From positions 1,426,001 to 1,490,000 of the forward strand of contig CM121341.1 in assembly GCA_051530055.1 (NCBI GenBank): a stretch of 64,000 bases of DNA, read 5' to 3'. Source of the stretch: Neoechinorhynchus agilis. Its lineage: Eukaryota > Animalia > Acanthocephala. This document shows, piece by piece, positions 7,898 to 64,000 of this stretch. The notes below the pieces were generated by a model, which did no database searches, was not told the DNA's origin, and saw only the letters and a program-made list of their open reading frames with translations. The position numbers and the translations under genes are program-made. Numbering within the stretch: position 1 is the stretch's first letter; each line of letters starts with the position of its first letter.

Positions 7898-10220
7898 TTA
7901 CTGCTCCTGTCGCAATTTCGACTCCAAGATCACCTTTTGCTCGTCGCTATAGTTTTCTAGAGCCTTTAAGACAATCGCTTTTTTGTATTCTGTTTGCCAA
8001 ACTAAATATTTAATCACAGCAAGTTTCCCCTCTTGTGACAGATCCGAGTCGTCATCCTTTACAATAAGACTAAAAGCGATTCTAACCAACCGGTCAACCA
8101 AATCGTCAGTGTCCGCAAAACTCGCCTTAATAATGACTGGTTGAATAAGAGCTTCATACAGAGGTCCATAATTCTCAAGATCCTTCCGTAATGGCAACAT
8201 ACTTATTGCGAATTCGAACACGGCACGCATGGACGCTTCGTCGTTTGGCGAATATTGGGCGATTGTGTTCAATATTTGGCCCGTACAACCGCATAAATTG
8301 TCTCTTAGTGATGATTTCTTTGATTCTCCTTGTGTAGCGATTGGCGCGCGATTCTTCACAATCTCGTGTAGTTTGTTAAGAATGTTAGAGAAATGCGGAG
8401 CACAGAATTCCGGCTTCTTAGAAACTAACACACGTATACCGTATATGCAATTTTGGACGAGTTCTTCATGATTATCATTTAAGAAAGTGTCGAATACCTC
8501 AAGGGCCAACTGAGGCTCCATGAATATTCGGTCCTGATTGTTAAGAGTACAGGCCAAAGTAGCTAAGATGAACGATTTACGAGTTGAATTGCCTTGCTTG
8601 AGCTGGTTCAATAAATGACCAATGCAACTTGTGAAGACTCGTTCAAATGTCTCACATGTGTGTTGGTCTTGATTAAGAGCATTTGCGCACGTTGGAAGGA
8701 GATCGCCGGCTGCTTCGGTCACAAGTGAGTCCAATTCTGGTTCCTCCCCGTCTGATTCAGGATCAGCTGTATCTTTAAAGCATTCCACCTTAAGGAGATT
8801 ACACAGGTCGTTACAGAAAAATCAGAACAATTTTAATGAATTGTAAGAGATGCGTTTTAGAAGAAAAACCCCAGAAACCTGTCTAAATCTCCAATGTACG
8901 CATTAGAACGCTTTCAATGAGGTTTGCAACGTGATCGACGGGAATAACCGAGAAAAATGACTTATCGAAACCACCAACCAAAATTTGAATTGCATTGAGA
9001 GCACTGGAGGCAAATGAGTGTTGATTGGCAGTTCGAACCTTTTCTTCAAGTTCTTGGTAGGTCTTTTTTAGAAGCGTTTCAATTCTTTGTTCATTGACAG
9101 CACCGGCAGGCAATGGCTTTCCTTCTTTAACAGTTTTTGAAGCGACATTATAGCACATTACGAGAAGACAGCATGCACATCGGGCTGCACTGTTTTGTAT
9201 ATCCTCTTCCGGATGGTCAAGCTGACGATGAACCAAAGTCCAAAGGCGATCAAAATGACCGACTAGTTTTAGTTCTGCATTAATAGCCAAATCGGATATC
9301 ATTCCAAGAGCACTTGATCGCTCATCAGCGTAATCGCGTTCAAAAAGTTCAAACTCGTCATCATCGCTGGAATCATCTTCATCGTCATCGTCGTCGTCAT
9401 CATCGTCGTCGTCGTCCATATCGGAATCGTCTAAATGAAGACCGTTTTCATGATCACCACCGATATCAATATCGTCCGAATTGCTGCTAGCTCCGTTTCG
9501 TAAACTTGGTAATTTAATATCGCCATCAATCGCAAACGTCTTTCCTGTGCATTCGACGAGACTATGAACGAGTTGGTCGCTGATGTTCTCCTTGTAAATA
9601 TTCGTAAGAGCAGCCAAAACGTCATAGGCACCACTTCGTTCAGCAGCATCGGCATCCTCATTATGAAGAAGAGCTGATGCGAATTCAGCGGCGCTGTCGG
9701 AATGAGCTCGAACTTGAGGAGTATTGGCGTATCGAAATACAGTTGATAATGCCGACAATGCTTCAGTGAACGCCGGTTGTTCATTTGTGACGTCTCTGGG
9801 TTTTAGACACTGACTAAGAACGGCAAGAAGGTCATTGACCCATGGTTCAATCAATTGATCAACGGCAGATACAGCAAAACTGAGACTTTCGAACACAAAC
9901 TCTTGCAATCGTACTGATTGATTGTTCTTTTGAATATAGAAAAGTCGATGGAAGAGATCGTTGAGATAATCGACCAAATCATTGTCTAAACATTCACATG
10001 CTTCTTCAATGGAATAAAATAGTCGACTGATGAACAATTGAGTGTCGGCATCAGCTTGTTCGTAATTAATATCCTTTACTTTTGTAAGAGCTTCTAGTAT
10101 AACTGGCATGAAAATAGGTCCATATTGATTTGCATTTCCTTCGACATATGACAAAAGTTCTCCGAGTGCAAAAAGAGCACTTAGACTCACAATGCTTTCG
10201 AAATTCCGCACGAAACTCAC
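7898..10220 (-). CDS. IPO4: Importin-4 (karyopherin beta family), C-terminal about 738 aa; predicted exons 10220-8896 and 8789-7898; N-terminus not found in window
   Basis: HEAT-repeat protein with SALFALG, an acidic loop followed by DERSSALG, ELDSLVTEAAGDLLP and LRDNLCG, matching remembered IPO4 motifs. Confidence 0.8.
8790..8895 (-). other. Predicted non-canonical hairpin intron (106 nt) in IPO4
   Basis: Inverted repeats at 8794-8808 and 8877-8892. Removal after exonic TAC gives VLMRT-VECFKD, compared with remembered human VLQRKTACQD. Confidence 0.65.
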
Positions 10221-12850
10221 ACCAGAAACATGATCAGGCAGACTAAAAAACGTACAGGGATTAAGGCGTTCCCTGTATGCGACGCACAGAGAACCCGTCC
10301 AATCTCCGTCGATAAGTTATCAAATGGACAAAGATTGAACAAACCGAGAGTTGTATCGTTAAATGTGGGGACGATGACAGGTAAAGCGATGGAGGTGGTT
10401 GATATGCTGAAGAGATGGAGGATCTAAATCCTATGTGTCCGGGAACTGAGATGCAAAGGAGTCAAGGAGCGCGACCTAGGTGATGGTTTCAAGCTATTCT
10501 ATAATGGGTCGAAATGGAATTGGTATTGTCCGGGGCAATAAACATACTGATGGAGTTATCGAGGTATACGATAATGTGGATGAGGATGGAACTGGGAGAA
10601 CAATGCTTGATGATCGTCTCTTGCTATGCTCCGCAAGCAGGCCTTACGCAGCAAGAAAAAGTCCAGTTTTTGGAAGATATGTATGATGTGATGAACGAAA
10701 TCAAGGAGAAACGATGTGTAGTATGTGGAGATTTCAACGGTCATGTCGGAGCGGAAAATTCGAGCTGGAGGCTGGTGCATGGTGGGATAGGCTTTGGAAA
10801 CAGTAATGCAGAGGGCGAAAGTATTATGGACTTTGCGTTGGCAAAAAATCTCGGAATAGCAGACACCTACTTCAAGAAATTGGAACGACAACTGGTGACC
10901 TACAACAGCGGTGGAAGGCGGATAAAGATCGACGACATCCTTTGTCCAGAAGAGAAATGGAGAGAAGTGTGGACCGTCAAAGCTATACCCAGCGAAACTT
11001 GAGCTTCCGAACATCGATTATTGTACATAGGACTGGAGATCAAGAATATCAGGCCGCCCAATTACAGGATTCCTCCAAAATCAAATGGTGGCGACTGGAT
11101 CAACCTCAAGAGATTGTCAACAGTCTAAATCCTGAGATCAATGACGCGGATAGATGGTGAGCCGAGTCGGCGGGGTTAATTTGGTAGAGCAGGCAGGGAA
11201 ATTCTCGGGTTGACCACGGGTAGAAAAGGAAAGAAACAAGAGACACGGTGGTGGAACGATGAGGTTCAAAGGGCGATCCCCGATAAAAAGAGAGCAAAGA
11301 AGGAAATGGATACAGATCGATCCGTGGCAAATAAGCAGCTATATAACAAAGCCAAAAACGAAGCTAAGAAAGCTGTGGCTATAGCGAAGCAAGAAGCAGA
11401 TTCGGTCTTCTATTCGAAGCTACATGAAGACAAGGGTAGATCATACTTCTTCAAAGTGGGGAAGATAAAAGATAAGCGATCGAATGATATTACAATTGCT
11501 AAGCAGATAAAGGATAAGGACGGGAAAATTGTTTTCGAAGAGAGAGCGGTCAAAGAAGGTGGAGGGAACCCTTCGATCAAATGCTAAATCATGAAAATGG
11601 AGCAGAGAGAGTCAAGGAGCACGAGCCTAGCGAAGGATTATTGAGCGCAATATCAGAGTACGAAGTGAAAACAGGACTTTCCAAAATGAAAAACGGGAAA
11701 TCGACGAGCCCGGATCTAATACTCATAGAGGTCTGGAAGGTCCTCAGAGTCGACGTATTTTCTCTATTAAGGAATCTGTTCCAGTGCATATTCTCTACTG
11801 AAAAATGTCGGACAAATGGAGAAAGGGTAAACTGGTGCCGATATACAAGCCGAAAAGGGATATAAGAGCTTGTTCAAGTTATAAATAGATCAAATTGATG
11901 AGCCATACGATGAAGTTGTACCACCGGATAATCGATCGACGCCTACGGTGCGAAACTTCTATATCGGCGCAACAGTTTGGATTTATGCCTGGTAGGAGTT
12001 CTGCTGAAGCTGTGTTCGCCCTACGACATTTGTATGAGAAATGTCACGAAAAAGAAAGGAAAGTGCACAGCGTCTTCATCGATCTCGAAGAAGGCTACGA
12101 CACTGTCCCGATGCAATTGGTATGGAATTAGCTGAGAAGAAAGCTCTGTCCCGAGAAATATGTGAGAGCGATACAGGACATGTACAGGAAGAGCAACATC
12201 GGCATCAGGACGCCAGTCGGAAATACGGATAGCCTCCGCGTAAATGCAGGATTGTATCAAGGTTCAGCACTGAGTCCTTATTTGTTGGTATTGATTATGG
12301 ACGAGATCAGCAAATCGATCAGTAAAGGCTCGCCGTGGAATATGCTTTTCGCATACGACATTGTCCTCTCCTGTTATACTGCCCAGGAAATTGACAATGA
12401 CCGGGAGAAATGGAGGGATGCTATGGAAAGTCACGGTCTGAGAATTTCGAGAACGAAGTCAGTCTACATGGGGCCTGGGGACGTTTCGCTGCAAGGGGCC
12501 CTGCTGCGGAAATCAAATAAATTCATATACCTCGACACTCTACAGTGACTACGGAAAACGAAAACGCCGCGGAGATTTCATCCAGAATCAATAGTGGATG
12601 GATGAAATTGAGGAGCATAACCGGCATTTTGTGCGATGACAAAGTGCCGCTGCTGCTAAAAAGTTAGGGTCCACAAGACCGCTATCCGACCAGCCATGTT
12701 ATATGGAGCTGAGACCTTGAGTAAATCATATCAAACGAATGCAAGTGTCTGAAATGAACATGCTCCGGCGGATGTCAGGTTATAGTAGGCGTGACACGAT
12801 CCCAAATCTGGCGATTCGTGGCTACACAAAAGTTCAAGATGTCAAGGAAA
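10207..12850 (+). mobile_element. RTE-clade non-LTR retrotransposon, family 1, copy B (degraded, most of ORF)
   Basis: APE motifs (LNVGTMTG, YAPQ, GDFNGHVG) and RT motifs (QQFGFMPGRSS, FIDLEEGYD, GLYQGSALSPYL, FAYDIVL, GLRISRTKS). Confidence 0.92.
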
Positions 12851-14169
12851 TGGAAAATTACGAGAGCTCTTGAATTATGCGAAAAAACTGGCCTATCTAA
12901 AAAATATATTAGATAATCGATTAAAATAGGGCTCAATGGGTAGATTTTTTAAATTACGGTGTTTGCGGTTATGCTCACAGATAACTATGATAAATCTTGA
13001 ATTATACATCTGAACGAAATCCGACGCCTGATTTTAGTTCATTGAATAAAACCGTCGAGAAGGATCCCCTTCTGAAATCTGTTGTCTTTGTAATTTTGAT
13101 TACTTCTATTAGGTAAAATCTTAAAAATTTATAATTGCTGAGAATAAACGCTGTTCGCGGTCAATTTGGCAAATTGATTCTGCGAAGAATACTATAGCGC
13201 CCATGTTTCAGTGTTGTAAGAAAGATCTGGACATCTCGAGATTTTAATCTCAGGCGCAATTTCGTGCCATTGCTTTTGATAAACAAAAATTAGCTATATT
13301 TGATTCCTAGTTGAGATGAGTGCTGATCTTCGTTTCGCGTTGAAATCATTCAATTGCTAGATTAGATTTTTCCACAAACATTCCAAAATCAAATAATAAG
13401 ACTTCACGAATGGCACGTTTTGGCAAAATTTAACTTTAAGTATTCTTATTTTAAATCGACAGAGACAATTTTTATAACTCCTAAGTTTTTTCAAATCCAA
13501 ACCTTTCAGTATTGAGTCATGCAATGAAATGGGACAAAATATCGCAGTCTGTATATTAAATGAACAATTAATTTAATAGCTTATTTTCTTCATCGATTTA
13601 TTGCAATATCGTTTTTCATCTTTGACGAGGATATGGTTTTATCTTTTGCGAGAGTTGGGCGATTTGGCTATGCTCGTACATTGTAAGTTTTTACCATAAT
13701 CTCCCTTTTGTCATTTTAACGAATAATTCGTATAATCGCTTTTGGCACAAAAATAAACGATCAATTTATAGACTCAGCCCGTTAGGATCGCTTTTAAAGG
13801 TTTAAAATCTTCTTAACAAAGAAAGATGTAAATGATATACAAAACGATAATTCAAGCTAAAACTGATCGTTGGAATATCAACCTTCTTGTTATTATATTC
13901 ATGCTTTCCAGCATAAGTGCATGATTTTTCTAAATTTATATTTTCACGAGTTGGCAAACGAAAATAAGAATTCTATCCAATTGTTCCTCCGAGTGGATGT
14001 GTATTCCAAATGGCGAATTGTAACACACTCGATCTTTATTATTGAACTCTCTATTGCGAACGAAGTGTCCTTGAATTGTGTCCAGATTTCATACCAACAA
14101 CAAGAGTCAAGGACATAGATATTGGATGTATCACTGAGGCAATGAATAAAAGAGTGAATGACTACATGC

Positions 14170-15930
14170 TCTGTGATATCGTTCACTACGGCAAAATGGC
14201 TTTGCGAGAGAATAAGAATAACTGAAACAAGGACAATATGTCAAAGTAGGAAATGCATGCGTTGAAATTATTGAAAGAGGACAAAACTATAAGAGCATGT
14301 CGAGCGGACAAAGGGAAAGCATTAGTCGTGCTAAACACAACGGACTATATCAAGGCGGGTATGGATATATTGAAAGCAGACCAATTCCAATAACTTAAGA
14401 AGGACCCAACTGCGATAAGAGAACGTGGATTTAACAGTTACTTGAACGGTTTTAAGTTGGCCAGGAAAATTTAGAGAATAAGACCTACTAACGCGGAGCC
14501 GGGTTTCATGCACCTGCTAACAAAAGTTCATAAACCATTTCTGAAGGTAAGACCGATCATTGGGTATTTGGAAACTCCAGCATCATACGTTAAAGATGAC
14601 CCGTCATTTGTTGAAACAATCGGAAAATACGATCAAGGGAACCACTTCCTTTGGACTACTACTTTCGAATGTGCCGATAAAGGAAACAACTATCTTAGCC
14701 GTGGATTTACTTTCTAAACGATGATTTGATCCCAAGCTGGATATGGACGTTTGGTCAGTACTGATTGATCATTGCACGACGAAGTCTGATTTCTCATTCG
14801 AAAAAAATTCTAGTACCAGACGAACGGAGTGGCAATGGGATCACCGTTAGGACCAGCGTTGGCCAACATCTATATGATAGAATATGAGAAGTAACTGAGA
14901 TCGAAGTCTCCTGAGATTGTGGCGTGGTGGAGGTACATTGAAGATGTGTTTGCGGGGACTAACAAGGATCCTATTAAAATGAACTTAGAGGAACAAATTG
15001 GACGGAATACATCCGTCGATAAAGTGGAGCATCACCCCAGAGGACGACCAGGATCAGCTTCTTAGATGTGTTGATACAACGACAAGGAGCTTTAATCACG
15101 ACGTCGTTATTCCATAAGCCAGGTATACCTTGGGGACGAACCATTGGAGAAACCACGGAACTACCAAGTACAAAATCAATGCTGCAGCAAACAGTTTCAA
15201 GCGAGTCATAAAAATCGCAAACAATGCCCATGGGATGAGGAAGGGCATAGAGAGCATCTTTGTAAAACCTCAGGACCTTGAGTACCCGGCATACGCTATA
15301 AGGATGGCATTGGCTAGAGCGAAGAGCACGGCGGAAAGTGATGGTAGAGACGGTTTGGAGAGGAAAATCATTCGAGCTAAGCTCATCTCAACGAGGACGG
15401 GTAACACGCTGACATACTTGTTCAGAAAATCGAACTCGACGAACCTGGTTCCCTACTATCCGTCAGGACTAAAACTGAGCGAGATATTGAAAGTGAAACC
15501 ATCACAGCTTATGGAAAATCGATGCGTGGTATATTCGATACCCTGTAAGGATTGTGACCAGGTCTATGTTGGACAGACAAAACAGGGAATGCGAAAAAGA
15601 GTCAAGCAACATGAGTATCCCCTACGACGAAGTGACATGTCGTCACCTTTATTCAATCAAGCTATCAAATACGACCACAGAATCGATTTTGAAAACGCGT
15701 GTACAAGGATGGCCGAGAGGAACCTACAAAGCAGGTTGATAAAAGAGTCTCTGCTCATTAACATGGAGGAAACAATGGAAGGGAACAAGAACAATAATTC
15801 TCTAAGATTTCCGACCAGGAATCCCCATGGGTCTTTTGCGCAGGTTGGGGTGAAACATCACCTCAGGAATCGACGGTCCCGCGCACCCGAGTCAACGCTA
15901 CCAACTTAAGTACCCTCACCACATCCTCGT
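14170..15930 (+). mobile_element. Penelope-like element 1 (RT plus GIY-YIG), degraded
   Basis: VRPII, GVAMGSPLGPALANIYM and FLDVLI RT motifs. GIY-YIG motif VVYSIPCKDCDQVYVGQT...RVKQH. Confidence 0.9.
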
Positions 15931-18240
15931 GAACTTTTTGGTTACCTCTTCAGTTATATTGCTTGTAAGTTTTCTACAATTTCAGCCCAACTTACAAGCG
16001 GTGTGCATCGTAACTCGACTGAGGCATATAAAGGCAAGAAACGAAAAAATAAAATGATAATTGTCTCGAAACGCGATACTTTGATAAAAATTCCGAATTC
16101 TCTTCATTGAACCGAACATTTAGTTTCACCAATGGATCCCGCAGTATGTGACATTCTTCAAGGCTTTCTTGACCGAGTGGAAAACCTGCTACAAAATCCA
16201 ATATCCGGAGTCGATCCTTCAAACGTTCAAATATCTACGAGTACTCATATCACAAGCAGCTTGGAGTAACAAATGGGAGCGAGGGATTCAGTGATAGTCG
16301 ACTCAATCCACCAGCAAATCAAAGTGAATTGGCCGATTTTCTTGGCGTTCGCAATGATTCACCGAGAATAACAAACCAGTTTCCTGCGAGTGTTCCAGCT
16401 CCACAAGTGAACCTGATGAACGAGCATATGGCCAGCATGAGATCAGTCGCTCCAATAATCGTTGCTTTCCTTCCAGTGTTATTTGATTTTGTGAATCGAT
16501 CTTCGGGCAATGCTCAAAACAATAATCATAGAACAGCTTCTACGGCGACGCAAAACGCTCCAGGATTTATTGGACGAAATGTGCCTAAAATTCAACAATA
16601 ACCAATATTCAGTGAACAATCCTGACTTGTAAAACAGCTTGACAACATGATTCGAAGGGAATCTACAAATTGCAATAACGCCGGGATACTTGGACTTGAA
16701 ATTGTTAATGGGGTTTTAGATTCAGAGCACGGCTTAGAAAACATTCCTTCGCGTTTGCTTAAAAGCAAAACAATAACACCTTGTCTTCTTTGTGGCACCA
16801 ATGAATGTGTTTCCTGGTATTACAAAAGAGAAAAAGTCTCGTGTGGCAAATGTGCAAATACCCTTTTCGGAACAGCCGAAGATTCAAATAAAAAAGGTGG
16901 TGGTAATCGCGTTCAAAATGCAAACACTTAAAACATATCGGCTTGTCTGAGTTCTTCAAAGTATCGACAGTCAACAAATGAGCAAATTAGTTGTCAAAAA
17001 TGCTATAGAGCGAAAGGTTCTTCTTGGTACCGCCTCAAACCCAAGACTTAAAATAACAACAACATTCAACGGGAATTCAACCCAGCCGAAACAGTTCCAA
17101 TACCGTAAACGCTGATCGCGTACAGCAACAGAACTCCCGCGATGACAAAATCTGTTTTTTGTGCAAGATAAACCAAAGTTCGAGATGGCAAAAGTTCGGG
17201 GAATTGTGCATTTGCCAAAAAAACATGGATTTGTCTACATCCCAATTATGGCACAATTGGCAAACATTCAAGCTGTAGCTGGGCAACAAACAAGCGCTTC
17301 TTTGGGAGCAGCGCAAACGAATGCTTTAAACCAAAATATTGTTCAAGCGCCAACACAAGCGACGAATCCTACGTTCAGTGATGCTCAAGAATTAACTTCA
17401 AATGAAAATCCTGTTCCAGAGAGTTCGAAACATCATTATTCCACCAGCGACAGGCGTTGCGATTTGGCTTGGAACAGATCAAAGTTCAATCTGGTACACT
17501 TATGAACATATGAGTATGTGTCAAGAATGCATTGGATCCGTCGTTCCTTCGATTAAAAATCTGTAAGGATCGTATGATCCACATCGCCGCTGCAATGATT
17601 CGTATTGCTCAAAATGTTCAGTGAAAGAGAGCATCGAATGGTACAGCTACGGGCGATTTAAATTCTGCGAAACGTGTATAGGAACTATCGTTCCTATATC
17701 CAAGCTTCGACCGGAAAACGTTCAATCAACTGATGTTCAAACATTGCTAAACGAACCAGCTCGTGAGACTCCGACGAGAAATCCGAAAACCAATTTGTAG
17801 ATAATACCGAAACTCGGCAAGCAAATGATGAGTTAAGCTGCCATCTTTGCGGTGCGAAAATCACCGAAGGAACATCTTTGCATCCTGGGACTGAAATATG
17901 CGAAATTTGCTAGTTTGTCCGCAAAAGCAATCGAGGAATCCTTGAATACTATCCCGATTCCGGAGACATTCCCGAAACAATCTCAGGTTGAGACGCCACA
18001 TCCAGCAAATTATTCCAGTTTAAAGCAATTGATCGAAATGGTGCACAGTGGATCAATTGTACCACAACCCGGGATCGCTGAAAGCTCATCGATGTATAAT
18101 TCTGATGGATTGTGTCAAGCGAGAACGTCGAAATCCTAACGACTTTATATCCAAACACTTAAACAAACGTCGACTTTGTTGTCGATGCAAAGATATTACA
18201 AAAACACTTCGGTATCGTGGCAAATGTCCACCAACTTTCA
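15930..18240 (+). repeat. Degenerate copy of the Cys-rich (GATA-like finger) element
   Basis: Homologous to 24490-25900 and broken by stops. Contains CLLC-x16-CGKC. Confidence 0.8.
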
Positions 18241-18734
18241 GTCGTTGGTGGAGAGTGGCCTATACTCTACAGATTTTCACGAATCGTGCGACCTTCATAG
18301 CTCATAATATCGGTTGCTTGAACTCTAAGGAAAGCATCAAAGAATTTAAAGACAAGTTTCACGTCCTATTAAAATTCCAATTCAAGTAAAAGAAACAGGC
18401 AAACCTATTCCTGTGGCAGTGGTAGAAGCGGACGTGAACCAAGTGCAAGTGTTATGTGCTAAACGATGGATTTTCCAATGTATGGAAATTTCCTTCACAA
18501 GAAACGCAACCACCAAAACAATTTACACATTTCGGCAATGTAACATTTGTATACAATGGGAAGTTGGTTTTGTTCAGAACTCCATCATATGTCCGTCTCG
18601 AATAACAAAACGGTCAAGTGCGGGGATTGTGGTGGTGAGGAACGTCAAAGCTATACCCAGCGAAACTTGAGCTTCCGAACATCGATTATTGTTGTAAAGA
18701 AATTAATCATTATTGTTTCAATTTCACTTAGCGA

Positions 18735-19344
18735 TATTCACTCAGAAAATTGATTTATATTGAAAATTTTCGGCCTTTTCGTTGGCCTTCTTCAGTCAGA
18801 TCTACAACTTAAAAGGAACGTTATCAATTAGTTTATCCGGTGGGACTCGTAGATTGAGTTTGTAGTCAGCTTTGTTGCCAACAAAAGTACCTGTTTGCTG
18901 GATCATGATGGCTTCCATGGTCACTCTGTCGCGTCTTACGTCACTCCTCGCAAGAACTTCGACGCCGTCAAAATTCATCTCATGCTTATTGCCATTGATG
19001 TGGGACACTATCGCCGAGCTCACATCAGACTTTTTAAGAGCTGCTCTTGTGTGTTCAGCAATCCTTCTTTTTAGATTGTTCGTTTGTCCCACATATGACA
19101 GACTGCAATTCGAACATGGGATCTTATAAACACATCCAGCAGGAAGATCTTCATTCTTCGGTCGGAGTATTCCTTGCCGAGTCCTTCCCTTCCTACTATA
19201 TGTACTGAACACCTTGTCCCTATCGATTCGTTTTATTAGGGTTTCTATTTTAGAGTTCCATTGATCACTGATAAATGGCGTCTCAATAAATTGCTTCTTT
19301 TCATGAAACTTCTGGAAAATGAACCTTGAATCCAGAAGTTTCAT
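18735..19344 (-). mobile_element. Penelope-like element 2, 3' end (GIY-YIG domain plus hammerhead motif)
   Basis: CVYKIPCSNCSLSYVGQTNNLKRRIAEH. The stop is followed immediately by CTGAAGAAGGCC-AACGAAAA-GGCCGAAAATTTTC. Confidence 0.9.
18762..18805 (-). ncRNA. Minimal type I hammerhead ribozyme motif of Penelope-like element 2 (also at about 6470, 27400, 47150 and 12 times in 27.7-32.5 kb)
   Basis: CUGAAGA core, GGCC/GGCC stem II, GAAA, and palindromic GAAAAUUUUC in place of helix III. Confidence 0.7.
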
Positions 19345-19774
19345 CTTCGTATTTTTAAGTGTGACATTGTTTTAAGTTCTTATAAGCGAGCCTTTTTCCC
19401 GGACTTCGTTCATTTCACGTTTAAGAGAAATTGACTTAGATCCCTGCGTTTTCAAAAACAATAACCAAGCACAATTTTGTTTCTTTTAATATATAAACAC
19501 GAACCGTACACTTTAAAGCGAGCAAAAAAGCATCAATTCCGATGGGTGAGCGCTTTTAAAAAAATGGGAAAGGGAGCTTTCCGAGCGCGATTCCAAAGAG
19601 GGTGCAAATTCGTATCGTTTTTAAAGAAAGTGGTTTCTCGAAAAAGAAACTAAGCCTGAGACTGCAACACAACATGAAACTCTCATAATTGTTTTGTATA
19701 TTTTTTTAATGTCGTTAATTTCATTAATAACATTTTAGTAAAGGTTAACAATCTGTTTGAAACACACTCACCAC

Positions 19775-19975
19775 CTCCCGCCAAATTCCAGCTTTTGTCC
19801 TTCCTCGACCGTCGCCATCACGCTGGCAGCATTGCCTCGTTGTACTGCCAGCGAGATATTTTGTCGAAGGAATACGCCTGCTCTTGAGTCTCCGGTTGCC
19901 TCTCAATTTCTTCGAGAGATCCTTTTCAAATTACTTGCCAAATGCATTTTAACCTTTGCGACCTTAAGAAGCTTC
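19775..19975 (-). mobile_element. CRE-like element C-terminal REL endonuclease fragment
   Basis: Minus-strand translation TGDSRAGVFLRQNISLAVQRGNAASVMAT, a typical CRE-clade C-terminus. Confidence 0.7.
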
Positions 19976-21100
19976 CAAATTTTTGATTTCAGTGAAGAAC
20001 ACCGCATTTTATGCCAATCACAACGATTCGAGAGTTTAATTATCTTTCATTTCTTCAATGTCCCCTCTGAGATGCAATCGCATCTTTGGTCGTCATTGGG
20101 CTTTGGCTGCTCGCCAATACTTACTGCTTGTAAGTTTTTAAATATTCGAGTTCGTGTGAAATTCTTCTAAACTATTCGCGTTGTGAGCTCGCTCTTTTAT
20201 GAGAAAACGAAACTTTTTAGGTAAATACCTCACCAAAATAGTGCCATTTTTTGCCCAGACTACGATGATGTAACTTAGAGTTTTATTTCTAAATTCAAAG
20301 AAGTTTATCGAATGGGTCCTAATTTTGTAGATGGTCATTGTATAGGAATTTTCGTCGTAAAAAACGATGAGCATCAACGTTTAAAGTTGGTGAGCGTAAT
20401 CCCGGTTAAAGATTCCTTTATTATTCGGAAATATTTCGAAAGCGGAAACCTCGCCTCATCAGTCATCTAAAAAGGTTTGTGTAACAGTTCTTTTTATTTG
20501 TTTGGCCTTTTTAGCTCGGGTTGAGAATATGTCCGCTCGTATTCCCTGCATTGTGTAGCGCTTTTAATTCATTTTCATCAGGTAACTGATAGCCAATTTT
20601 AAACTGAAGCTCGAATTGTTACCTTCCGTGGTGTCGGTTGCCGAGATGTATGTAAGGCCTCTCAACATTCTTTTATTTTCTTATTAGTTCATCGAACATT
20701 TTTCAGCTTTTTCAGAGCACTTTACGTTTTTTGAACAAAACATTATTGATTATAACACATTCGCAACCAAGCCATCGGGGAAACTCGGTGCCGGTCCCAA
20801 GCCCGGACAAATGGGGAGGGTTGACGTCAGGAAGGGCATCCGGCCTTAAAACCCTGTGCCAAAACTATCTATGCCAATGTCAAGTTCTTTAATTTCGAAC
20901 GATCTGACAAGGGCATACCCCTTATGCGACGCGCAGACTCGGCGCCCGGAGGATGCGAAAAATGAATTAGGGTTATCGGGTAAGCGACGGGCCTGGCTAA
21001 AGAAACGAGTCGTCATAAAAATGGGAATTCGTTAAATGACAGGGAGATACCGAGAAGTTGTAGATTTGATGAGCAGAAGAAAAATTCAGAATACTCGGGA
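19969..21100. repeat. Dispersed repeat of about 1.1 kb, inverted relative to about 36330-37490 (upstream flank plus RTE family 2 5' end)
   Basis: Reverse-complement co-linearity with scattered substitutions and indels. Confidence 0.85.
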
Positions 21101-21900
21101 TTGTCCTAGGAAATGAGGAGATGAAGATGAACGCGCCCTGGACGACATTATTAGCAGATGATCTGCTGCTCACGGCGAGGGACTCGGTGACACTCGAGAA
21201 AATATTGAAGAGTCGGCGACAGCTCTTAGAAAGCAATGGCCTGAAAATTAGCAGGAGCAAAACGATATGGGACCAGGCGAAGTAGGCATGCAGGAAGTTA
21301 ACGTCGAAAAGAGGAACAACTTCAAATATCTGGGCAGCCTGCTAAGCATGTCCTGTGAACATGCGCCAGAGATCGGACAAAGATTTCAATGCGGGTGGAA
21401 TAACTGGAAAAGAGTAACGGGCATCCTGTGCGATAAACGTCTCCTGAACAAGCTCAAACGGAGCGTGTACAAAGTCGTGGGAAGACTTGCAATGGTATAC
21501 GCAGCGGAGACTTGGGCTACAAAAAAGGAGAATATACAAAGATTGACCGTAAATGAAATGAGGACGCTGAGATGGTCAGCTGGAGTAACACGCAGAGATA
21601 AAATACCCCAAGGCCGAGATTAGAAAAATGTTCCACGTCGAGCCGGTGCAGGAAGTGATATCCAAAAGAAGAATGCGATGGTTCCATCATGTCGAGCAAC
21701 GAGCGGAAGACGATTGGATAAAGAGCGCCGGACATACTGAGACCAAGGGGAAGAGGAAACGGGGAAGGCCGAAAAAAGATGGATAGTGTGATGGAGGACC
21801 TAAGACGATTGGATGAAGTTTGATTTTTAAGGATAAGCTAACAAAGCGACCTCTCTAGTATGAGAGAAAGCTATAAGGAGTGTGGGTGTGTGAGTATAAC
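20760..21900 (+). mobile_element. RTE family 2 copy with a large internal deletion
   Basis: 5' UTR and APE start are fused to late RT (ADDLLL, GLKISRSKT, FKYLGS, MLRW-like, RGRPKKRW-like 3' region). Ends in a TG-rich tail. Confidence 0.85.
20763..20826 (+). ncRNA. Twister ribozyme (P1 type) at the 5' end of RTE family 2
   Basis: Core GCCGGTCCCAAGCCCGGA...GGAGGG. P1 CAACC/GGTTG, P2 CCAT/ATGG, extra GNRA hairpin CGGG-GAAA-CTCG. Confidence 0.75.
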
Positions 21901-22039
21901 AGATTCACATCATATTCCTATGATTGTAATAATAACTAACATTCAGCCTTAGTCATCAATTCATAATCGCAGTTTTATTTTACGTTTCCCTTCGATTCCT
22001 AACCCACTTTAAAATAAAACCAACATTTTTGCCAGTTTT

Positions 22040-22400
22040 GCAAAATACGGGATAACCGCAGGTGAGGCATGGTAAGCTAAAGCAGAAGTAAAACCTGTAG
22101 AGATCGGGTGAAGGTATTCCTAAATGTCGGAGGCGTTTGAGAGGATAAATTTTAAAGGCGCTGCGATTGAGAGAGACTGATCTGTGAGTCCCATTTCAAA
22201 TTTGATTGAAATTGGATACCCATAATTCTTAGGGAGGTAACTCGTAGGATGTCATTTAGAAGCTCAGGGGACGATGTGGAGTTGCAGGGGAGAGAGGGGA
22301 CCATTTCGAAGCATTTAGAGAAATTAAGATGGAGTTTGTAATTAATGCAGAAATCTTTTGTGTGTGATTTCTTTAGAGGTTAAGGAAACCTCTCCTTCTT
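22040..22400 (-). mobile_element. L2/CR1-like RT C-terminal fragment
   Basis: Minus-strand translation LRVTSLRIMGIQFQSNLKWDSQI and ILKRLRHLGIP. Confidence 0.6.
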
Positions 22401-26243: not shown

Positions 26244-26532
26244 TCCCCAAACAGAATAAATTGTATTGCATTTTATTGAAAAAACATCGATTCTCTATAA
26301 TCTCATTGATATTTATTTGCGATTTACGGAATCGTTGCGCTTTTTGTTTGAAGAAGAACGATTTTTTGTGAGAGATGAAAAACTCCAGTTGGGCTACCCG
26401 GATGCGTCGAGTGTAATGGAGCCAATTTGGTATGCAATAACAATCAAATTTTAAAATGCTGACATGTTAGATACCGGATTATATGACTAGAATGATTGTT
26501 TAGGTATTCACCTGGTAAACAACTTTTATTAA

Positions 26533-26568
26533 AAACGTTTCGAACCTGGTCGGTATCATCATCAGTTA
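26533..26568 (-). ncRNA. Orphan minimal hammerhead-like motif; related copy at 48058-48100
   Basis: CTGATGA-T-GATACC..GGTTC-GAAACGTTT followed by AATAAA. Palindromic AACGTT in the helix III position. Confidence 0.5.
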
Positions 26569-27051
26569 ATTTGATGATGAACAACGTGCTTCTTGTTGAT
26601 TGTTTTGTTGCAATTATCAGCTGTGAAGACCGAGTTTGTAATCTCGTTCGTCATTCATATCCCAGTTCTGTTCTTTAATTAAGAAGGCTTCCTTAATTAA
26701 GCGTCAAAAGTTATTATGTTCACTTGCTAAAAAGCATTGTCTGGTCATAATTGACCAGTGGCCAGTATGCACCTCGTTCAACGTGACATTCGACGATACA
26801 ACCTTCTAATTCTTGGACAATTTATGTTCCTCGTCTTCAGATTCATAGGCAACAGCCTACTTTTCTACCTCTTGGTATTTGCGGCAAATGAGCTTTCCCA
26901 TCTGCACAGAAGGCCGGAAATAAAATTTGCATTTTATCGGCAGACCGCTGTTTTCAATTATCCTCAAGATTTTTTTCGCCGACAGTGGGTTGGTGGGCGT
27001 ATGTTCGGCACTCCAAGTGCATATGTCCATTCTATTCGGGCCCATGGCTGG

Positions 27052-40130: not shown

Positions 40131-40169
40131 TAAACGCTTACTCGTAATGGGGTTTAAAAACCCAAAAAT

Positions 40170-40872: not shown

Positions 40873-40874
40873 CG

Positions 40875-49179: not shown

Positions 49180-51901
49180 TCATTCGCTGCCTCTAAAGTC
49201 CTTTTCGGCTTCCAAACTTCTTTTTTCTATGAGTGTTTTAAGGCGCTCTACAAAATCTTCGACTTTCATTTCTCCGGCAATGTCACTGTCCCTAGTTCGA
49301 ACATTTACTGTTTTAGCTTCTCGTTCCTTTGGTCCCACAACTATAATTTAAAAAGTTAATTTAAAGTTTATAAAACCCGTAGAGGTTTTGAAAAATAAAA
49401 GAAACAGTAAGGCAGATATTGAGCCCGAAGAGAAATAAAGTTCAATCTTTTGTAAAACCAAATACAAAAGTAGTTTGAAAGGATTGTTCATTGTGATTAT
49501 TTAACTGAATCATGAGAATTTTCAAGCTTTCAAGACCCTGGCTATTCCTCAGCAAAAAAATGATTAGGTACCAAAAATTCTGAAGCGGGTCAATTAAGGA
49601 ATCAGCTCTATCGTAACAGCCTCGTAAATTTCATCTAAGCTAATTGGGATTTCAAACAACCAAGGGGCTAACTTAAGCATGAAATTAGATTTCAACGTTT
49701 TTCTGATTAGTCAATATCAGATCCGATCGACATTTTAATTTACATGAAATATTAAAAACTGAAACTTGATAGTAAGGGGATGCATTTTAATGCAGTGTTC
49801 ATTTATAAAAAAATCGATCTTACCTAGAATAAAATTGAACTGTTCAATTTCTGCCATTCGGATTTTCTTGTTAAAAGAATCGGAAGCGTAATGCTTGCAT
49901 TCGCTCATTAAGCCAGCCGACACCATTTTTTTGTCGACCTAAATTGAACTTTTATTTCGATTGACTGTCGGAACAATTTTACCTCAAGTGCATAATTGTT
50001 TTCATTCATTGAGACTGGTACGATTGCCACTTGTCTAGGGCTGAGCCATAATGGCCATTTCCCTCCGAAATGTTCGGTCACAATAGCCATCATTCGTTCC
50101 ACTGAGCCAAGAATAGCTCTGTGGATAATAATTGGCCGGTCACGGGAATGGGCATCCTCTCCCGACATAAACTCTAAGTTGAACCTTTCAGGTAATTGAA
50201 AATCGAGTTGAATAGTTGCACATTGGTGCCAACGTTTAAGAGCGTCCGCTATGTTAACGTCGATTTTTGGACCGTAGAAAGCGCCATCTCCAGAATTGAG
50301 TTCCCATGGATCTCCCGATTCTGTTAATGCCTTTTTTAATTGCTCTTCCGCATAATTCCACGTCTCGATTTCTCCAAGAAACTTCCCAGGCCTTGTGGAT
50401 AATTGCAGCTTGAATTCGAATCCGAACACAGCGTAGACATCTCGCATGAATTCGAGACAGTTACTGATTTCGTCTTTTAGTTGAAATTTTCCGCAAAATA
50501 TATGAGCATCGTCCTGTTGGAACCTCCTTACACGGGTCAATCCCGATAAAGAGCCGGAAAATTCATTTCGATGAAGAGCACCAAAATCGGCATATCTAAT
50601 TGGAAGTTCTCGCCACGATCTAAGACGCGATTGAAACATTAGGCAATGTCCAGGACAGTTCATTGGTTTTAGAGCAAATTGTAAACCTTCAGATTCGAAG
50701 GAAAACATGTTTTCGATGTAATGTTCCCAATGCCCTGATTGGATAAATAGTTCATGATTGAATATGTTAGGCGTTATTACTTCCTTAAAGCCTCGTTCAC
50801 TATAATGCTCGCGTATCAAATCCATTAGTTTGTTGTAGATAAATGCACCTTTTGGATAAAAGAAACAAGAGCCCGGACTCATTTCGTGAAAGAAGAACAA
50901 TTCTTGTTCCCGGCCGATTTTCTTATGGTTTCTTCGTGCCGCCTCTTCTTGAAACAGAGTCCATTCGCCCATTTCCCTTCGATTCGCAAACGCTATACCA
51001 TACAAGCGTTGAAGCTGTTCTTTTTCCGAATCTGATTCCCAGTAAGAACTACTATTGTTCAATATCTTAATTATACATAAAAGTTAAGTATTCGGAACAT
51101 GAGGTCCTTTGCATATTTCTACGAGCGTCCCGCATCGATATACACTAATTGCTTTCTCCTCCTCCTCCATTTTCTCCTTAATTATCTTTTGTTTAAATGG
51201 ATTTTCTTCAAATAATTCTAGGAGCTGATGTTTGGTCAACACTAAACGTTCAAATGGCTTGTGTGCTTCGATTATTTTCTCACATTCTTTTTCAATAGCG
51301 GGCAAGTCCTTATTAGGTCAATGTCAATGGTAGCAAACAACTTAATCCCAATTTACTGTACATTGATCATCGACGCTTTACCGGAAATAGTGCCACCGTC
51401 TCTTATAAACATATCATAATAGAATCCTGTTTCGATAGTTTGTTCATAACATAAATCACCGCCATACGCTAATTCCATCGCTTGTCCTAAAATGTGAGCT
51501 GAAGAGTGCAAGCAAACTTCTTTTCCTTTGGAGTCTTTATACGTGTGAGCCTCAATGGTACAGTCATCTTCAAATGGACGTTGAACGTCCCACAACTCAT
51601 TGCCATCGACAGTCACTACTACAACTTCTTTAGAAAGTTTCGGCGCATGACTTCTTAGAACATCTAATGGACAATTATGAGTATTTGCACTGACTTGCAG
51701 AGGCTCGTCACTTGCATTGGTAATTGTAACTGTTATTTTCTTAGCCTCCAGTGAGACCTGCTCAGATTTAAGACGATCCCATACTTTTAGGCGGTGTTGG
51801 ATATAATCCGCTCTGCACCTTCGAATGACCCCCATTTCTTCACTGAGCTTTGGTGCATCTGAACCGTTTCCAGTCGAGCGTTTTAAACTAGAGGATTCCA
51901 T
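49180..51901 (-). CDS. TARS1: Cytosolic threonyl-tRNA synthetase; predicted exons 51901-51378, 51309-49983, 49938-49824 and 49340-49180; contains an unexplained in-frame TAA at 51086-51084
   Basis: TGS domain, [67 protein letters not shown]...NVRTRD. Canonical GT-AG introns at 49982-49939 (44 nt) and 49823-49341 (483 nt). Confidence 0.95.
51310..51377 (-). other. Hairpin intron in ThrRS (68 nt); boundaries uncertain
   Basis: IR at 51317-51332 and 51359-51374. TAA direct repeat. A canonical 53-nt GT-AG alternative (51361-51309) also keeps the frame. Confidence 0.5.
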
Positions 51902-53421
51902 TTATCTTAAAATGGTGGGCGTTTAGCAGTGTAAGTTTAAGTGAAATAGAATTTAAGATACTTGTAGGTTGGGACCTCCATTTGTCCATTTATACCTTCA
52001 CGAGTACTCTACAAAAAAGTATTAAGTGTTTATAACATCCTTTCCTCGGCTTATTTTTCCTTTAGGCACACAATCAACCGCAATCTTGGATTTGGGAAGG
52101 TATTGAATCACTTAGACTCTGACCTATACGGTCTCACTAATGAGCCCGCTTCCTCGAAAGGAAACTCCGAGGATCCGGACGGGAATGTACAAAATCATAA
52201 TCGTATGGTTCAGGATATCAAGTGATCCAATCACTTCCCTGGTGTAAGAGATCGGTTTAACTGTATAAAATAAGACAAGGAAGTGATGCTCTAGCAAAAC
52301 CGAAATCAATAAAACCGGCTTGCCAGTAGACATAAGAGAACAAAAAAGGATGATGCTTTTGAGAAAGAAGGAGGATGTGTCTGAAGTTGGCAGTTTTCAT
52401 TGTTATTGTGGCCCACAAGGGGTTTCCCGGAGCTTTAGCTCTAACATTCTGTTTTCGTGAAGGTAAAGAAGCAGTGAGCGGCACCTTGGAATGGGGTTTT
52501 GACGTCGTAAAAACAATATATTGCTCCAAAATGCAATATTAGAATCTGTTTTGAATATAAATATTGATTTTTTAAACCTCAGCCAAAGTAGTCTTTTAGG
52601 AGCACCCAAAATCTAGAAAATATAGATATTAATTTATTAATCTCTATTTTCTCAATCAACGAAATATATCCATGAACAACTTGTGATAGAAAACTGGTGT
52701 TCAATTTCATTAAAATTAACATTGAAGTATTGTTTAATATAAACCATTTTCCTTCTTCTCCTGATGTAATATGCGAAATGGTACATTACATCGTACAAAG
52801 ATCCATACGGAATGCCCATTGCCGGCGATATTTTCGTGAAACACGACCAACATCCGTCGGATCAAAAAAAGAAGATAGCAAAAACACAATCAGTTCATTT
52901 TCTACGCATTTGTAAAGTGCAATTGAATGGTACAGAATCGTTATGTATGAATTTATGCCTAATATTCAGCTTATAGAAAATATGTGGTGAGTGTACATTT
53001 TTATCCTAAATTTCCTTCAATATATGTTATTGCACAAGGATTCACTTTTTATTTATTCTCCAAATTTTCGTTCATTTGCACATCTTTTTCACATTTTAGA
53101 CTTTAATGAATTAAAAATGCATGAGTGCTTGCAGTCCACTAATTCAAGTCTTGTCGCATTAAATGAATTCGAACCAGTATTTTACTGTAAATAATTTTTT
53201 AAGTATACGTTATTTTTTGTGGTCTATGCGCTCTATACATCTCGTACATTTTCTCAATCCTCACACCTTGAAGTCCTCATAAATGAAATAAATCTTTTTT
53301 GTACGAAGCAACTTTAAATTCGTAGTACAGGAATTAAATCTTGGGGACAAACTCATTTAAGCTCGCACAGACAATCGGTTTTTGTAGTAATCTTTATGTC
53401 TTGGATTATTATCTTCTGGGG

Positions 53422-53665
53422 AAGATACTTTCTTTTCTTAGTTTTGCAACCCTGGATTCAAAAATTCACCGATGATTTATTTCCCCGATATTTCACGTCG
53501 GATAATTCCAACATTTCGTCAAAGTTTGCCATTTGGAGTGTCTTTTAATAACTAACAATGACAAACCCTGAGGAAATGTTTGAATTGTCCGACGTGAAAT
53601 GTCGGAGATAAATCAGTGAATTTTTTAATCCAGGGTTGCAAAACTAAGAAAAAGAAGGTCATCTT
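53422..53665. mobile_element. Intergenic MITE-like fold-back element (about 245 bp, arms of about 90 bp)
   Basis: tagttttgcaaccctggatt...cacgtcgga...aacattt mirrored by aaatgttt...tccgacgtg...aatccagggttgcaaaacta. Confidence 0.85.
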
Positions 53666-54005
53666 TATATTCAAGTTAATGTAATATTTAGTACTTTCTT
53701 CGTTCTTGAGCAGTACTTTATTTTCATGCAAACGGTTAGGTATTATTTATCGAATGATTTTCAACCATACTGTTTATGCGTTTTCTTAACCGCGAAGACT
53801 CATCAATCTTTCACAGTTTTTAATCATTTTAAAAGTGTCAAAAGAACCATTTTGTAGCGCAGTTATTAATTCTATTTGGAGCTTCTATAAACATGCCAAC
53901 GCGTCTAAACTTTTAAAATTATTTTTATTTAAACGCGCCAAATTCCGAAATCGATTTTTCGTTCTCCTTGTTAACTTTTTAAACGAAAATTTAAATCAGT
54001 TTTAG

Positions 54006-55473
54006 ATGTCCACTCGTGCTGTCGGCTGCTTCACAAGCAAATTAAAAGTTTCTATTCTCGCCGCCACTTCCGCCGCAGCATTTGGACTCGTTTCTTATTA
54101 CTTTTATCTTCGTTCAAAACGAAATAGAAGTGTATTAGCTGTCTTTGCCAAATCAGTTTCTTCGGGTGAAGAAAAGTATGAACCGTTAGTAAACGGAGAT
54201 GTTGACTCGTGCCCTACTCAAAATCTATCCAACGGAAACCAGCACTCAATGATGAATTCAGGTCAATGTGTATCCAAAAGTCCGGAAAGCGGACCATCAA
54301 TCGATGAAATATTGGGATTATCTTCTGGTGAACTTAATCCGATCCTCGTAAACTCTATATCGCGCGTACTTAGCGAAGAGTTAGAGAAATTAATGACTAA
54401 CAGTGGTTATGTGTTAAACGAAAAATCAACAACCCGAATAGTTAATATTTTTATCACCCTATCGAACGTTTGTGCTTTCCGAAATTCCTTGCTTAGTATT
54501 TATAGCTCGACGATCCCTGATTTGACTGTGAAACTATTGACTTTTCTGTCCACAAAAAGGTACGCACTCCCGAATGAAGATCTATTAAGACTGAAAATAG
54601 TTTCAAAATCTCTCGTGTTCTTTGCCAATCTCTTAAGGGATTTCCCCAATGGAACAGTGGGATTCGGCCGCACTTATCTGATCAAAAAAGTGCTCAATCA
54701 AATATTTTAGGCCTGTATTGAGCATTTGTCGTTGATGTTCAATTCTGGCATCTATATTAGAAAGTGAACCCGATTGCCAAGTCAAAAAGAAATGTCTTAG
54801 GGTTGTTCTAAACTTGGCGATCTTGCCAGAAAATCATGACTTTATATTCCCCAAAATCGAATCCATTCTTCCATTTTGTTCAATGTGGACCAGCCATTCT
54901 AAAGATGAATCTCGTTTATGTCTGATATCATGGAAGATACTGGTAAATCTTTCCGGGACTAAAATGCTCTATCTACAGGGTGTTTATGAAAAAGGATTTG
55001 AGTTGCCTAAATCAAACGACGAGATTAAACTGATTGGCGATAGTTATCAGCATGAAATCGCCGAGCAAATGGTTCAACTTTATTCTAATCTCACTCATGA
55101 AGTCGTTAGACAGTCGCATAAATTAGGAACTGCTTATCTCCCTCATGCGGCTCTTGTACGACATTTGATGAACCCAAAATGTTTTGGCTTGACTATGGAA
55201 AAGTTTACTTTTTTGATGCAACAAAAATACGGGTTCCTAGATAGTTTATTGGAAATATGTGCCGATATTGCTGATTCGATCGATTTTATTAAGACATTCC
55301 GAAAAAATACTTTATGTTGGAGAGTGTTGCCCGGCGGTAGAACGGTGTCGTGTACTGGCATCAATAGCTTTAATGTTGACTATCCTGCTGATGATGAAGT
55401 TGATGATTGGAATAGTGAATCATTAGAAACATCGAATTTGGAGGATACAAAGGAAGAGATTCTGGAGGAATGA
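54006..55473 (+). CDS. Armadillo-repeat protein with N-terminal membrane anchor (ARMC10/ARMCX-like); predicted exons 54006-54676 and 54744-55473 (466 aa)
   Basis: Hydrophobic N-terminal segment followed by basic residues (AAAFGLVSYYFYLRSKR). ARM-like LSNVCAF and KCLRVVLNLAILPEN. Family assignment from pattern only. Confidence 0.5.
54677..54743 (+). other. Predicted non-canonical hairpin intron (67 nt)
   Basis: IR AAA(G)TGCTCAAT/ATTGAGCATTT. TCTG direct repeat. Nearby AG acceptors are followed by an in-frame TGA. Confidence 0.65.
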
Positions 55474-63618: not shown

Positions 63619-63654
63619 TATTCACATCCAACACTCTTCTGCAAAAGATAAACC

Positions 63655-64000
63655 CTACAAAAGAGCATGTTGATTCTGTGGTATGGATGTCACCGTTTTG
63701 AGAACAATGTTTATATCGATAAATTCCTCAATGTTTAAAGGGGGATGCAATTTTGAAAACACATAACTGCAATACAAATCAAGATTTATCTCTATTCCAT
63801 TTAATATTTTATCCAAAAGGGATTCAGGCGGATATGCGGTTGACATCGCTTTTATAGTTGAAGTCAGAAACTCGGTTGTTTTCGGAATGTCATATTGTTT
63901 TGAGATATTGCTATTAGCACGAACCTTATTCGTCCAATCTCGAATGAGGGAAGCGTAGAGGTTTTGAGCATGCAGTGATTTTCGCGAGGTTAAATCGTCT
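63655..64000 (-). CDS. Open frame running off the window end; either an upstream exon of the 63618 gene or a separate upstream gene
   Basis: The frame is open from 63999 to the TAG at 63655. No family recognised. Confidence 0.5.
   Translation of the reverse strand, partial: DDLTSRKSLHAQNLYASLIRDWTNKVRANSNISKQYDIPKTTEFLTSTIKAMSTAYPPESLLDKILNGIEINLDLYCSYVFSKLHPPLNIEEFIDINIVLKTVTSIPQNQHALL

Follow-up and report, generated by a model that had tools for sequence, protein, structure and literature searches.

In the larvacean Fritillaria borealis, more than 90% of introns lack GT-AG ends and require the U2 spliceosome for their removal (Henriet et al. 2019; Soo et al. 2026, PMC13326754), and a YAY triplet often stands before the 5' splice site and also forms the last three intron bases (PMC13326754). 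In the dinoflagellate protist Amoebophrya, non-canonical introns make up more than 60% of the total, and many of these bear inverted repeats (8-20 nt) together with direct repeats (3-5 nt) at the boundaries (Farhat et al. 2021, PMC7789003). Here we describe five short fold-back elements without GT-AG ends that interrupt four genes, IPO4 (importin-4), Nup155 (elements Nup155-A and Nup155-B), ThrRS, and an unnamed gene, in a 64-kb stretch of the genome of Neoechinorhynchus agilis (contig CM121341.1 of assembly GCA_051530055.1, approximately 1,426,001-1,490,000; hereafter the window, positions in which serve as coordinates throughout). N. agilis is an eoacanthocephalan, that is, a parasitic relative of rotifers, and thus not Fritillaria, an identity on which the original prediction had made the novelty of the elements depend.

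We suggest, with a probability of roughly 0.55, that these fold-back elements are exonic insertions of recent origin that act as introns and are precisely removed from the pre-mRNA without GT-AG ends, most likely by the major spliceosome. The likeness to Fritillaria consists in a metazoan host and in conserved genes having introns that lack GT-AG, with canonical introns alongside. The two hosts differ as Chordata and Spiralia, and the dominant termini of Fritillaria are AG/AC and AG/AT, whereas the N. agilis candidates are CA/AC, AA/AC, AT/AA, and GG/AT; further, RNA evidence, U2 dependence, and a duplication of U2AF with divergent subunits are established in Fritillaria, whereas the N. agilis elements are known from DNA alone. 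The non-canonical introns of Fritillaria are reportedly derived from transposons. The introner elements of Amoebophrya, omitted from the original prediction, are a precedent at least as close: they share with the N. agilis elements the inverted repeats that pair the ends, possibly the direct repeats at the boundaries, the lack of conserved terminal dinucleotides, and a splice position that varies relative to the hairpin, and their host is also a parasite with a fast-evolving proteome. They differ in forming repeated families genome-wide, validated by RNA-seq, in a protist in which U1 (and, in one strain, U5) was undetected. Introns built in this way are spliced out of the transcripts of both Fritillaria and Amoebophrya, which sets a precedent for removal at the RNA level.

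Other known systems share fewer features. Nonconventional euglenid introns have non-GT-AG borders and base-paired ends and coexist with conventional introns. The pairing in euglenids is short and lies a few bases inside each end, no target-site-like direct repeats flank the introns, and the mechanism of their removal is unknown. Exonic transposons with terminal inverted repeats, such as Tc1 in Caenorhabditis elegans and Ds/dSpm in maize, are removed from RNA, sometimes via non-consensus sites near their ends; this removal is mostly imprecise and concerns mutant alleles rather than fixed features of wild-type essential genes. Introners in Micromonas, Aureococcus, and other genomes are said to have been described by Gozashti and colleagues in 2022. 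Such canonical introners are likewise exon-inserted elements with inverted repeats and target-site duplications that become introns (PMC11282704), the difference being that they carry or create GT-AG sites, whereas the N. agilis elements have none.

The Nup155 gene is on the minus strand at 42562..46835 and consists of three exons (46835..45906, 45581..43620, and 43185..42562); the joined frames encode 1170 aa and match human NUP155 (E=4e-19). ThrRS, also on the minus strand (49183..51901), has the exons 51901..51383, 51311..49983, 49938..49824, and 49340..49183. Its largest open frame is the N. agilis protein KAL7673971.1 at 100%, the next matches being at most 69% identical, and its identity to vertebrate ThrRS is 62-69%, with 62% over a 443-residue alignment. 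The C-terminal part of IPO4 (7898..10241, minus strand, two exons, about 740 codons) contains two frames (7898-10220) that match residues 408-1043 of human importin-4 (E=1.9e-23). The unnamed gene is represented by two plus-strand open reading frames (ORFs), 54006..54710 and 54736..55473; a Pfam search with this gene (54006..55473) gave zero matches, which leaves the earlier label "ARMC10-like" unsupported and the junction without a homology check. Besides the breaks, the coding frames are open over 1170 codons in Nup155, about 740 in IPO4, and about 700, with one TAA, in ThrRS. Hairpin-ended elements account for five of the seven intervening segments in the genes examined. The expectation that ordinary GT-AG introns occur in the same genes holds for ThrRS, which has two on the minus strand (49982..49939, 44 nt, and 49823..49341, 483 nt), whereas IPO4 has only a canonical-looking 3' site, TTTTTTAG, near 10242.

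All five predicted breaks are real, and removal of the elements restores the frame. Each of the five has stop codons in all three frames and is therefore non-coding. The clearest case is Nup155-B (43619..43186, minus strand), a segment of 434 nt that begins with CACAGTGGTTC and finishes with GAACCACTGTGATAC. Its arms, CACAGTGGTTC (43619..43597) and GAACCACTGTG (43212..43190), are 23 nt long and 87% complementary, the ends pair at -26.5 kcal/mol, and the 5-bp direct repeat TACCA is found at both junctions; the possible registers run from TA..GA through CA..CA and include TAC^CA...AC^CA, where ^ marks a cut. Removal of the segment joins ...LLDMTELY^QRYAEPHHKTEHQIAIL, which aligns without a gap to human and to LLDLTTLFQTYADPFNLYDCQLALL of Pomphorhynchus laevis and retains QRYAE, aligned to QTYAD in P. 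laevis and GEFAD in human.

Nup155-A (45905..45582, minus strand, 324 nt) has a perfect 11-bp inverted repeat, AGCTGAATCAT (45902..45892) and ATGATTCAGCT (45599..45589), beside which the 7-bp direct repeat CAATACA stands at 45912..45906 and 45588..45582. Once it is removed, the motif EEDPLVQIEIDDSRHILY, which does not vary in length, can be aligned to nine orthologues without gaps. The junction chosen initially for this element, a 339-nt removal, showed no end pairing and was replaced by the 324-nt one after a duplex scan and alignment of orthologues.

Both Nup155 elements are insertions, as had been proposed. A search of 1.84 billion library representatives gave as the closest relative of Nup155 a P. 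laevis protein of 1126 aa, encoded by a single uninterrupted ORF (L002 3001-6381) that spans both sites and lacks both elements; thus both were inserted in the N. agilis lineage. This empty-site comparison was made for Nup155 only. The combination of a terminal inverted repeat with a target-site duplication is clear in Nup155-B (CACAGTGG... with TAC) and Nup155-A (AGCTGAATCAT with CAATACA), and the duplication is ambiguous in the IPO4, ThrRS, and unnamed-gene elements. Nup155-B presumably resembles transposons of the CACTA/Chapaev kind, given its CAC... terminus and 3-bp duplication. The general identification of the elements as DNA transposons is only putative. None of the five has a second copy within the 64-kb window, and the single family link is a weak one: an intergenic fold-back upstream of ThrRS (52031-52293) matches the interior of Nup155-B over 36 nt (86%) and in a colinear 11-mer. 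The insertions are probably not brand new, because the arms of the inverted repeats are already imperfect.

The ThrRS element (51382..51312, minus strand, 71 nt, GG...AT) has the arms GTCGATGATCAATGT (51374..51360) and ACCATTGACATTGAC (51331..51317). Alternative registers are a 68-nt GC-AG segment (51376..51309), a 74-nt TAT^TT...TAA^ segment, and a 65-nt element with a TAA target-site duplication. Among 71 ThrRS orthologues, the spacing between the FYYD and FERL motifs is 33 in 55 proteins, 34 in 13, 32 in two, and 35 in one; the 71-nt removal yields the modal spacing of 33 and the GC-AG option yields 34. The IPO4 element (8888..8792, minus strand, about 97 nt; 8895..8799 in the TAC^AT...TAA^ register) has the arms GGAGATTTAGACAGGT (8892..8877) and ACCTGTGTAATCTCC (8808..8794). 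The alignment with human importin-4 crosses its junction ungapped, with small gaps a few residues on either side, because of which removals of 94 or 100 nt, which also keep the frame, are compatible with the data. In the unnamed gene, a 57-nt hairpin (54681..54737, plus strand) lies exactly between the two ORFs; the frame is restored by removal of 55 nt (54681..54735) or by the 67-nt class (54677/81..54743/47, with the repeat TCTG). Another direct repeat there, TGAT, was rejected because the 54-nt removal it implies leaves the two ORFs out of frame.

The strength of end pairing was measured as the best duplex between the first and the last 30 nt, with 8 flanking bases, against 3000 random window intervals of the same length. 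The resulting p-values are 0.002 for IPO4, 0.0003 for Nup155-B, 0.0067 for ThrRS, 0.0103 for the unnamed gene, and 0.009 for Nup155-A, the last being somewhat post hoc given the refinement of that junction; the Fisher combined p for the five elements is 1.3e-8, with stems of 11-23 nt. By the same test, the two GT-AG introns of ThrRS are unpaired at their ends (p=0.57 and 0.98), and in folding of whole segments the ends close on each other in four of the five elements. The inverted-repeat ends of the original prediction are therefore borne out, with significant terminal pairing in four to five elements and a different inverted repeat in each. Weak hints in favor of removal from RNA are that the last 40 nt are as pyrimidine-rich as the first 40 nt or richer in all five elements and that the end duplex is stabler on the sense strand in four of the five.

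The junction repeats and sequence cues are less uniform. Direct repeats were found in four elements (7 bp in Nup155-A, 5 bp in Nup155-B, 4 bp, TCTG, in the 67-nt class of the unnamed gene, and 3 bp, GTA, in IPO4), whereas the frame-restoring 71-nt class of ThrRS has none. The shorter ones are not significant alone, because repeats of 3-6 bp arise by chance among frame-preserving pairs of the same search space, and only the 7-bp repeat of Nup155-A stands out. As for a sequence cue, the TAC^...TAC^ register is allowed in both Nup155 elements, TAC^...TAA^ in IPO4, and TAT^...TAA^ in ThrRS. These registers echo the YAY rule of Fritillaria, and a TAY^...TAM^ pattern, with YAY ending the exon and YA[C/T/A] ending the intron, is possible in four of the five elements, but we picked it after seeing the data, and the unnamed gene does not conform to it.

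Fold-backs are also abundant elsewhere in the window, where we counted 19 perfect inverted repeats of at least 12 bp within 600 nt versus 2.6 in dinucleotide shuffles (about sevenfold). Large intergenic fold-backs, with arms of 25-122 nt that are 75-99% complementary, lie at 53428-53657, 48070-48149, 52031-52293, 58610-58891, and 27400-28082, two of them just upstream of the starts of ThrRS and the unnamed gene. A sixth candidate element, at 42006-42051, is a perfect 20-bp palindrome (loop of 6 nt) whose removal would bring two open frames into phase; we regard it as a truncation boundary rather than an insertion, because the homology between a truncated paralog and its family ends there and the upstream frame is unrelated to that family.

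Several observations argue that the interruptions are absent from the mature messages. An exhaustive profile search of the protein collection with the joined Nup155 returned no second copy, only the three split models of this gene, and a protein homology search returned no second copy of ThrRS; intact paralogs were thus seen for neither gene in the protein collections. Since these essential genes are otherwise open and no second copy was seen, the interruptions must be taken out if the genes are to yield a product. The restoration of gap-free orthologue alignments by repeat-bounded removal in Nup155-A and Nup155-B supports such removal, as does the 71-nt segment of ThrRS, which is unmarked by a repeat. 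Further, the eukaryota BUSCO set is more complete in the N. agilis transcriptome than in the genome (71.0% vs 58.4%, with 7.5% vs 13.7% fragmented), which fits interruptions that are absent from mRNA. RNA-seq data of N. agilis are public (PRJNA1223661, 74 libraries), and Trinity transcripts carry the Zenodo identifier 10.5281/zenodo.17199078.

The public annotation points in the same direction. It was produced by a BRAKER run with RNA-seq hints, and BRAKER at default settings retains only canonical splice hints. Over positions 39180-60972, for which the models were compared, it cuts Nup155 exactly at the elements into three genes (311, 707, and 181 aa), ThrRS into two (182 and 421 aa), and the unnamed gene into two (237 and 196 aa), and the available in-frame GT-AG pairs nearby are unused. 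The splits made in place of GT-AG introns suggest that canonical junction reads are absent at these sites. The split N. agilis models form singleton clusters in protein collections. Gene counts and BUSCO-based "gene loss" in N. agilis may be affected by models split at hairpin elements.

A number of facts count against removal of the elements as introns. No terminal dinucleotide pair is common to the elements beyond chance, and no consistent geometry relates cut to stem: once the inverted-repeat span is subtracted from the length removed, the difference varies from about -2 to +10 nt. Only in Nup155-A and Nup155-B are the junctions fixed by a direct repeat together with orthologues, and the unnamed gene is without homology support. 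A chimeric query of the five junctions against protein collections returned only a fragment encoded in the window and no transcript-derived protein. The N-terminal part of IPO4, some 400 residues, was not found in the open frames of that strand up to 42 kb, so this copy might be truncated; upstream of its exon (region 10225-10480 and 10230-13000) come a canonical-looking 3' splice site, CCCTGTACGTTTTTTAG, and, directly adjoining it, an antisense long interspersed nuclear element (LINE). Finally, ThrRS has an in-frame TAA at 51086..51084 (minus strand) in exon 2, downstream of which the annotated 421-aa gene starts; the N-terminal part of the gene could therefore be decaying, and its insertion then need not be removed. 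The TAA replaces a conserved Gly of the HTGKIKA motif, aligned without a gap to human RHTGKIKALKIHKNSS, and forms part of a small hairpin, AATACTTAA...TTAAGATATT, that is flanked by TTAA repeats. Removing 15 nt here, TAC^TT...TAT^, would keep the frame with a loss of five residues. The TAA may mark a null allele or a micro-element, be edited or read through, or be an error.

If the spliceosome simply used cryptic GT-AG, GC-AG, or AT-AC sites close to the elements, a few codons would be lost or left behind, the mature proteins would have small indels, and no unusual splicing chemistry would be required, as in maize Ds/dSpm and C. elegans Tc1, whose insertions are removed via nearby cryptic sites. 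As was claimed earlier, no register within a repeat yields GT-AG, with a weak GC-AG option retained in ThrRS; in-frame GT-AG pairs that the original prediction did not list are nonetheless present near most breaks. They are GTAAAACG...TTCAG (342 nt) and GTTTCT...TTCAG (330 nt) at Nup155-A, both of which need gaps in the length-invariant motif, unseen in orthologues; GTACAG...ATAAG (53 nt) and GTAAAG...AAAAG (95 nt) at ThrRS, which produce spacings of 39 or 25 compared with 32-35 in the 71 orthologues; pairs at Nup155-B that add 19-43 residues and lose QRYAE, none of them credible; and pairs of 121 or 127 nt at IPO4, which delete 8-10 residues. No GT-AG boundaries are thus compatible with the orthologues. 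The GC-AG option of ThrRS, GCGTCG...ATAAG (68 nt), gives a spacing found in 13 of the 71 orthologues, and cryptic splicing could apply to this element and to IPO4, but no canonical option at Nup155-B preserves QRYAE, and the RNA-seq-guided BRAKER models used none of the canonical pairs. Moreover, the candidate donors are mostly poor in comparison with the local GTAAGA/GTAAAA, the exceptions being the 342-nt option of Nup155-A (GTAAAA) and the 95-nt option of ThrRS (GTAAAG). U12-type introns were ruled out, since the 5' motifs are missing: none of the five elements begins with RTATCC, and in IPO4 TCCTTAAG occurs at the junction itself with an unfit 5' site, GTACAT. Altogether, we regard cryptic canonical splicing as an unlikely explanation. 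The insertions could, alternatively, stay in the message, the genes being non-functional or segregating alleles, decaying or duplicated copies, or expressed as fragments. The stop in ThrRS, the N-terminal part of IPO4 missing from the window with a LINE abutting, the wealth of recently active elements and fold-backs in the window, and the origin of the sequenced DNA from a pool of worms all agree with this, but it requires four or five disabling hits in four neighboring genes, of which three are essential, although about 9 kb of coding sequence is free of other frameshifts and has a single stop. Together with the lack of second Nup155 and ThrRS copies in the protein searches, the imperfect arms, which indicate that the insertions are probably not new, and the excess of complete BUSCOs in the transcriptome, this makes retention of the insertions quite unlikely. 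Two further possibilities were rejected. Translational bypassing, as in T4 gene 60 and mitochondrial "byp" elements, lacks matching take-off and landing codons here and is implausible for gaps of 324-434 nt, and an assembly artefact does not agree with unique inserts, stems that are short and imperfect rather than long perfect palindromes, and clean neighboring frames.

The remaining explanations dispense with conventional recognition by the spliceosome. Internal eliminated sequences (IESs) of ciliates are short, non-coding, and TA-bounded; their termini are weakly inverted and accompanied by a short direct repeat, and they are precisely removed from coding DNA. The anatomy of the N. agilis elements, with inverted ends, a short direct repeat, precise restoration of the frame, and missing splice signals, fits IESs equally well, and the somatic nuclei of acanthocephalans are unusual in being fixed and giant, so the assembly might represent a germline form, read from whole worms rich in germ cells, of genes whose elements are precisely excised from somatic nuclei. 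The boundaries of the elements, however, are non-uniform, without the constant TA of ciliates or a constant TTAA, and the two closest metazoan and protist precedents operate on RNA. DNA elimination is unreported in Acanthocephala, a recent review of which uses neither "diminution" nor "elimination", and, as a weak point, the genome authors mention no heterogeneity of reads or k-mers from excised forms. Somatic excision is therefore very improbable in our view; if true, a bilaterian would for the first time be seen to eliminate DNA from within genes in an IES-like manner. Removal from RNA by a structure-guided endonuclease and a ligase, of the tRNA-splicing or IRE1/RtcB type, acting at the hairpin base is suggested by the hairpin being the sole feature common to elements with different terminal dinucleotides, and by euglenid nonconventional introns, which are likewise structure-defined. 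Yet the offsets of the cuts from the stem base vary among the elements, and this lack of a fixed cut position makes a non-spliceosomal endonuclease unlikely; a bulge-helix-bulge pattern is absent, and the U2 spliceosome of Fritillaria copes with introns of this kind. We give such an enzyme hardly any credence. Overall, it is rather improbable that the elements bypass conventional spliceosomal recognition by either a structure-guided non-spliceosomal RNA pathway or precise somatic excision of DNA. If one of these unconventional routes were true, hairpin-ended interruptions would be expected to outnumber ordinary introns genome-wide, and much of the acanthocephalan "gene loss" would be an annotation artefact.

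Returning to removal as introns, we propose that short fold-back insertions land within exons of N. agilis genes and that some of them, at least, may resemble miniature inverted-repeat transposons with target-site duplications. Their removal, its occurrence at the RNA level, and the spliceosome as its agent are the most likely further steps. The major spliceosome would then act with relaxed requirements for terminal dinucleotides; the pairing of the intron ends would draw the splice sites together, and a short cue at both junctions, possibly a TAY/TAM triplet ahead of each cut as in Fritillaria, may help. A scan of the window with Rfam detected no RNA family and hence no small nuclear RNA gene in the window.

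We found nothing relevant in the searchable literature on non-canonical introns or introners in Acanthocephala, rotifers, Pomphorhynchus, or Neoechinorhynchus, in accordance with the earlier suggestion that the system is probably undescribed. Introns are unmentioned in the N. agilis genome paper, in a comparison of rotiferan parasites that includes N. agilis, and in the P. laevis genome paper, and the Seison paper considers intron spans only. If RNA data confirm the proposed introns, Acanthocephala would join euglenids, Amoebophrya, and Fritillaria as another independent lineage in which fold-back insertions lacking GT-AG ends serve as introns, the first in Spiralia, and tolerance of non-canonical introns would appear to arise repeatedly in fast-evolving, often parasitic genomes. 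The pair of N. agilis, with elements in Nup155, and P. laevis, without them, could then reveal the changes that make a spliceosome permissive. The BUSCO completeness of the N. agilis genome is 47% for metazoan markers, and published claims of massive gene loss and lists of drug targets based on gene models may be distorted by introns that are invisible to gene finders.

The window contains several other features. A cluster of Cys-rich, lineage-specific genes with repeated CxxC...CxxC motifs occupies 24552-26243, 26927-27403, approximately 32000-34630, and 41582-42022; the family has no match in Pfam, some copies are truncated, and tandem repeats are interleaved at 27.4-32.4 kb. On the minus strand at 59273-63618, three ORFs in succession (1020, 168, and 160 aa) all end with the C-terminal pattern ...SC.D.RF+.LLEK+LKV and a stop of their own. 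They have no match in Pfam and are fused into a single 1401-aa gene in the public annotation, and within the 1020-aa ORF a unit of 41 residues is repeated three times in tandem, almost without change. Among mobile elements, a homology search with the LINE protein of the window returned no N. agilis protein, and the LINE and Penelope-like ORFs are missing from the public gene set, the closest LINE proteins in the database being about 40% identical. The Penelope-like elements at 15130-15909 (plus strand) and 18802-19344 (minus strand) encode GIY-YIG domains. The endonuclease segments of two LINE copies, at 5547-5978 (minus strand) and 10514-11002 (plus strand), do not differ at all, suggesting that the LINE was recently active.

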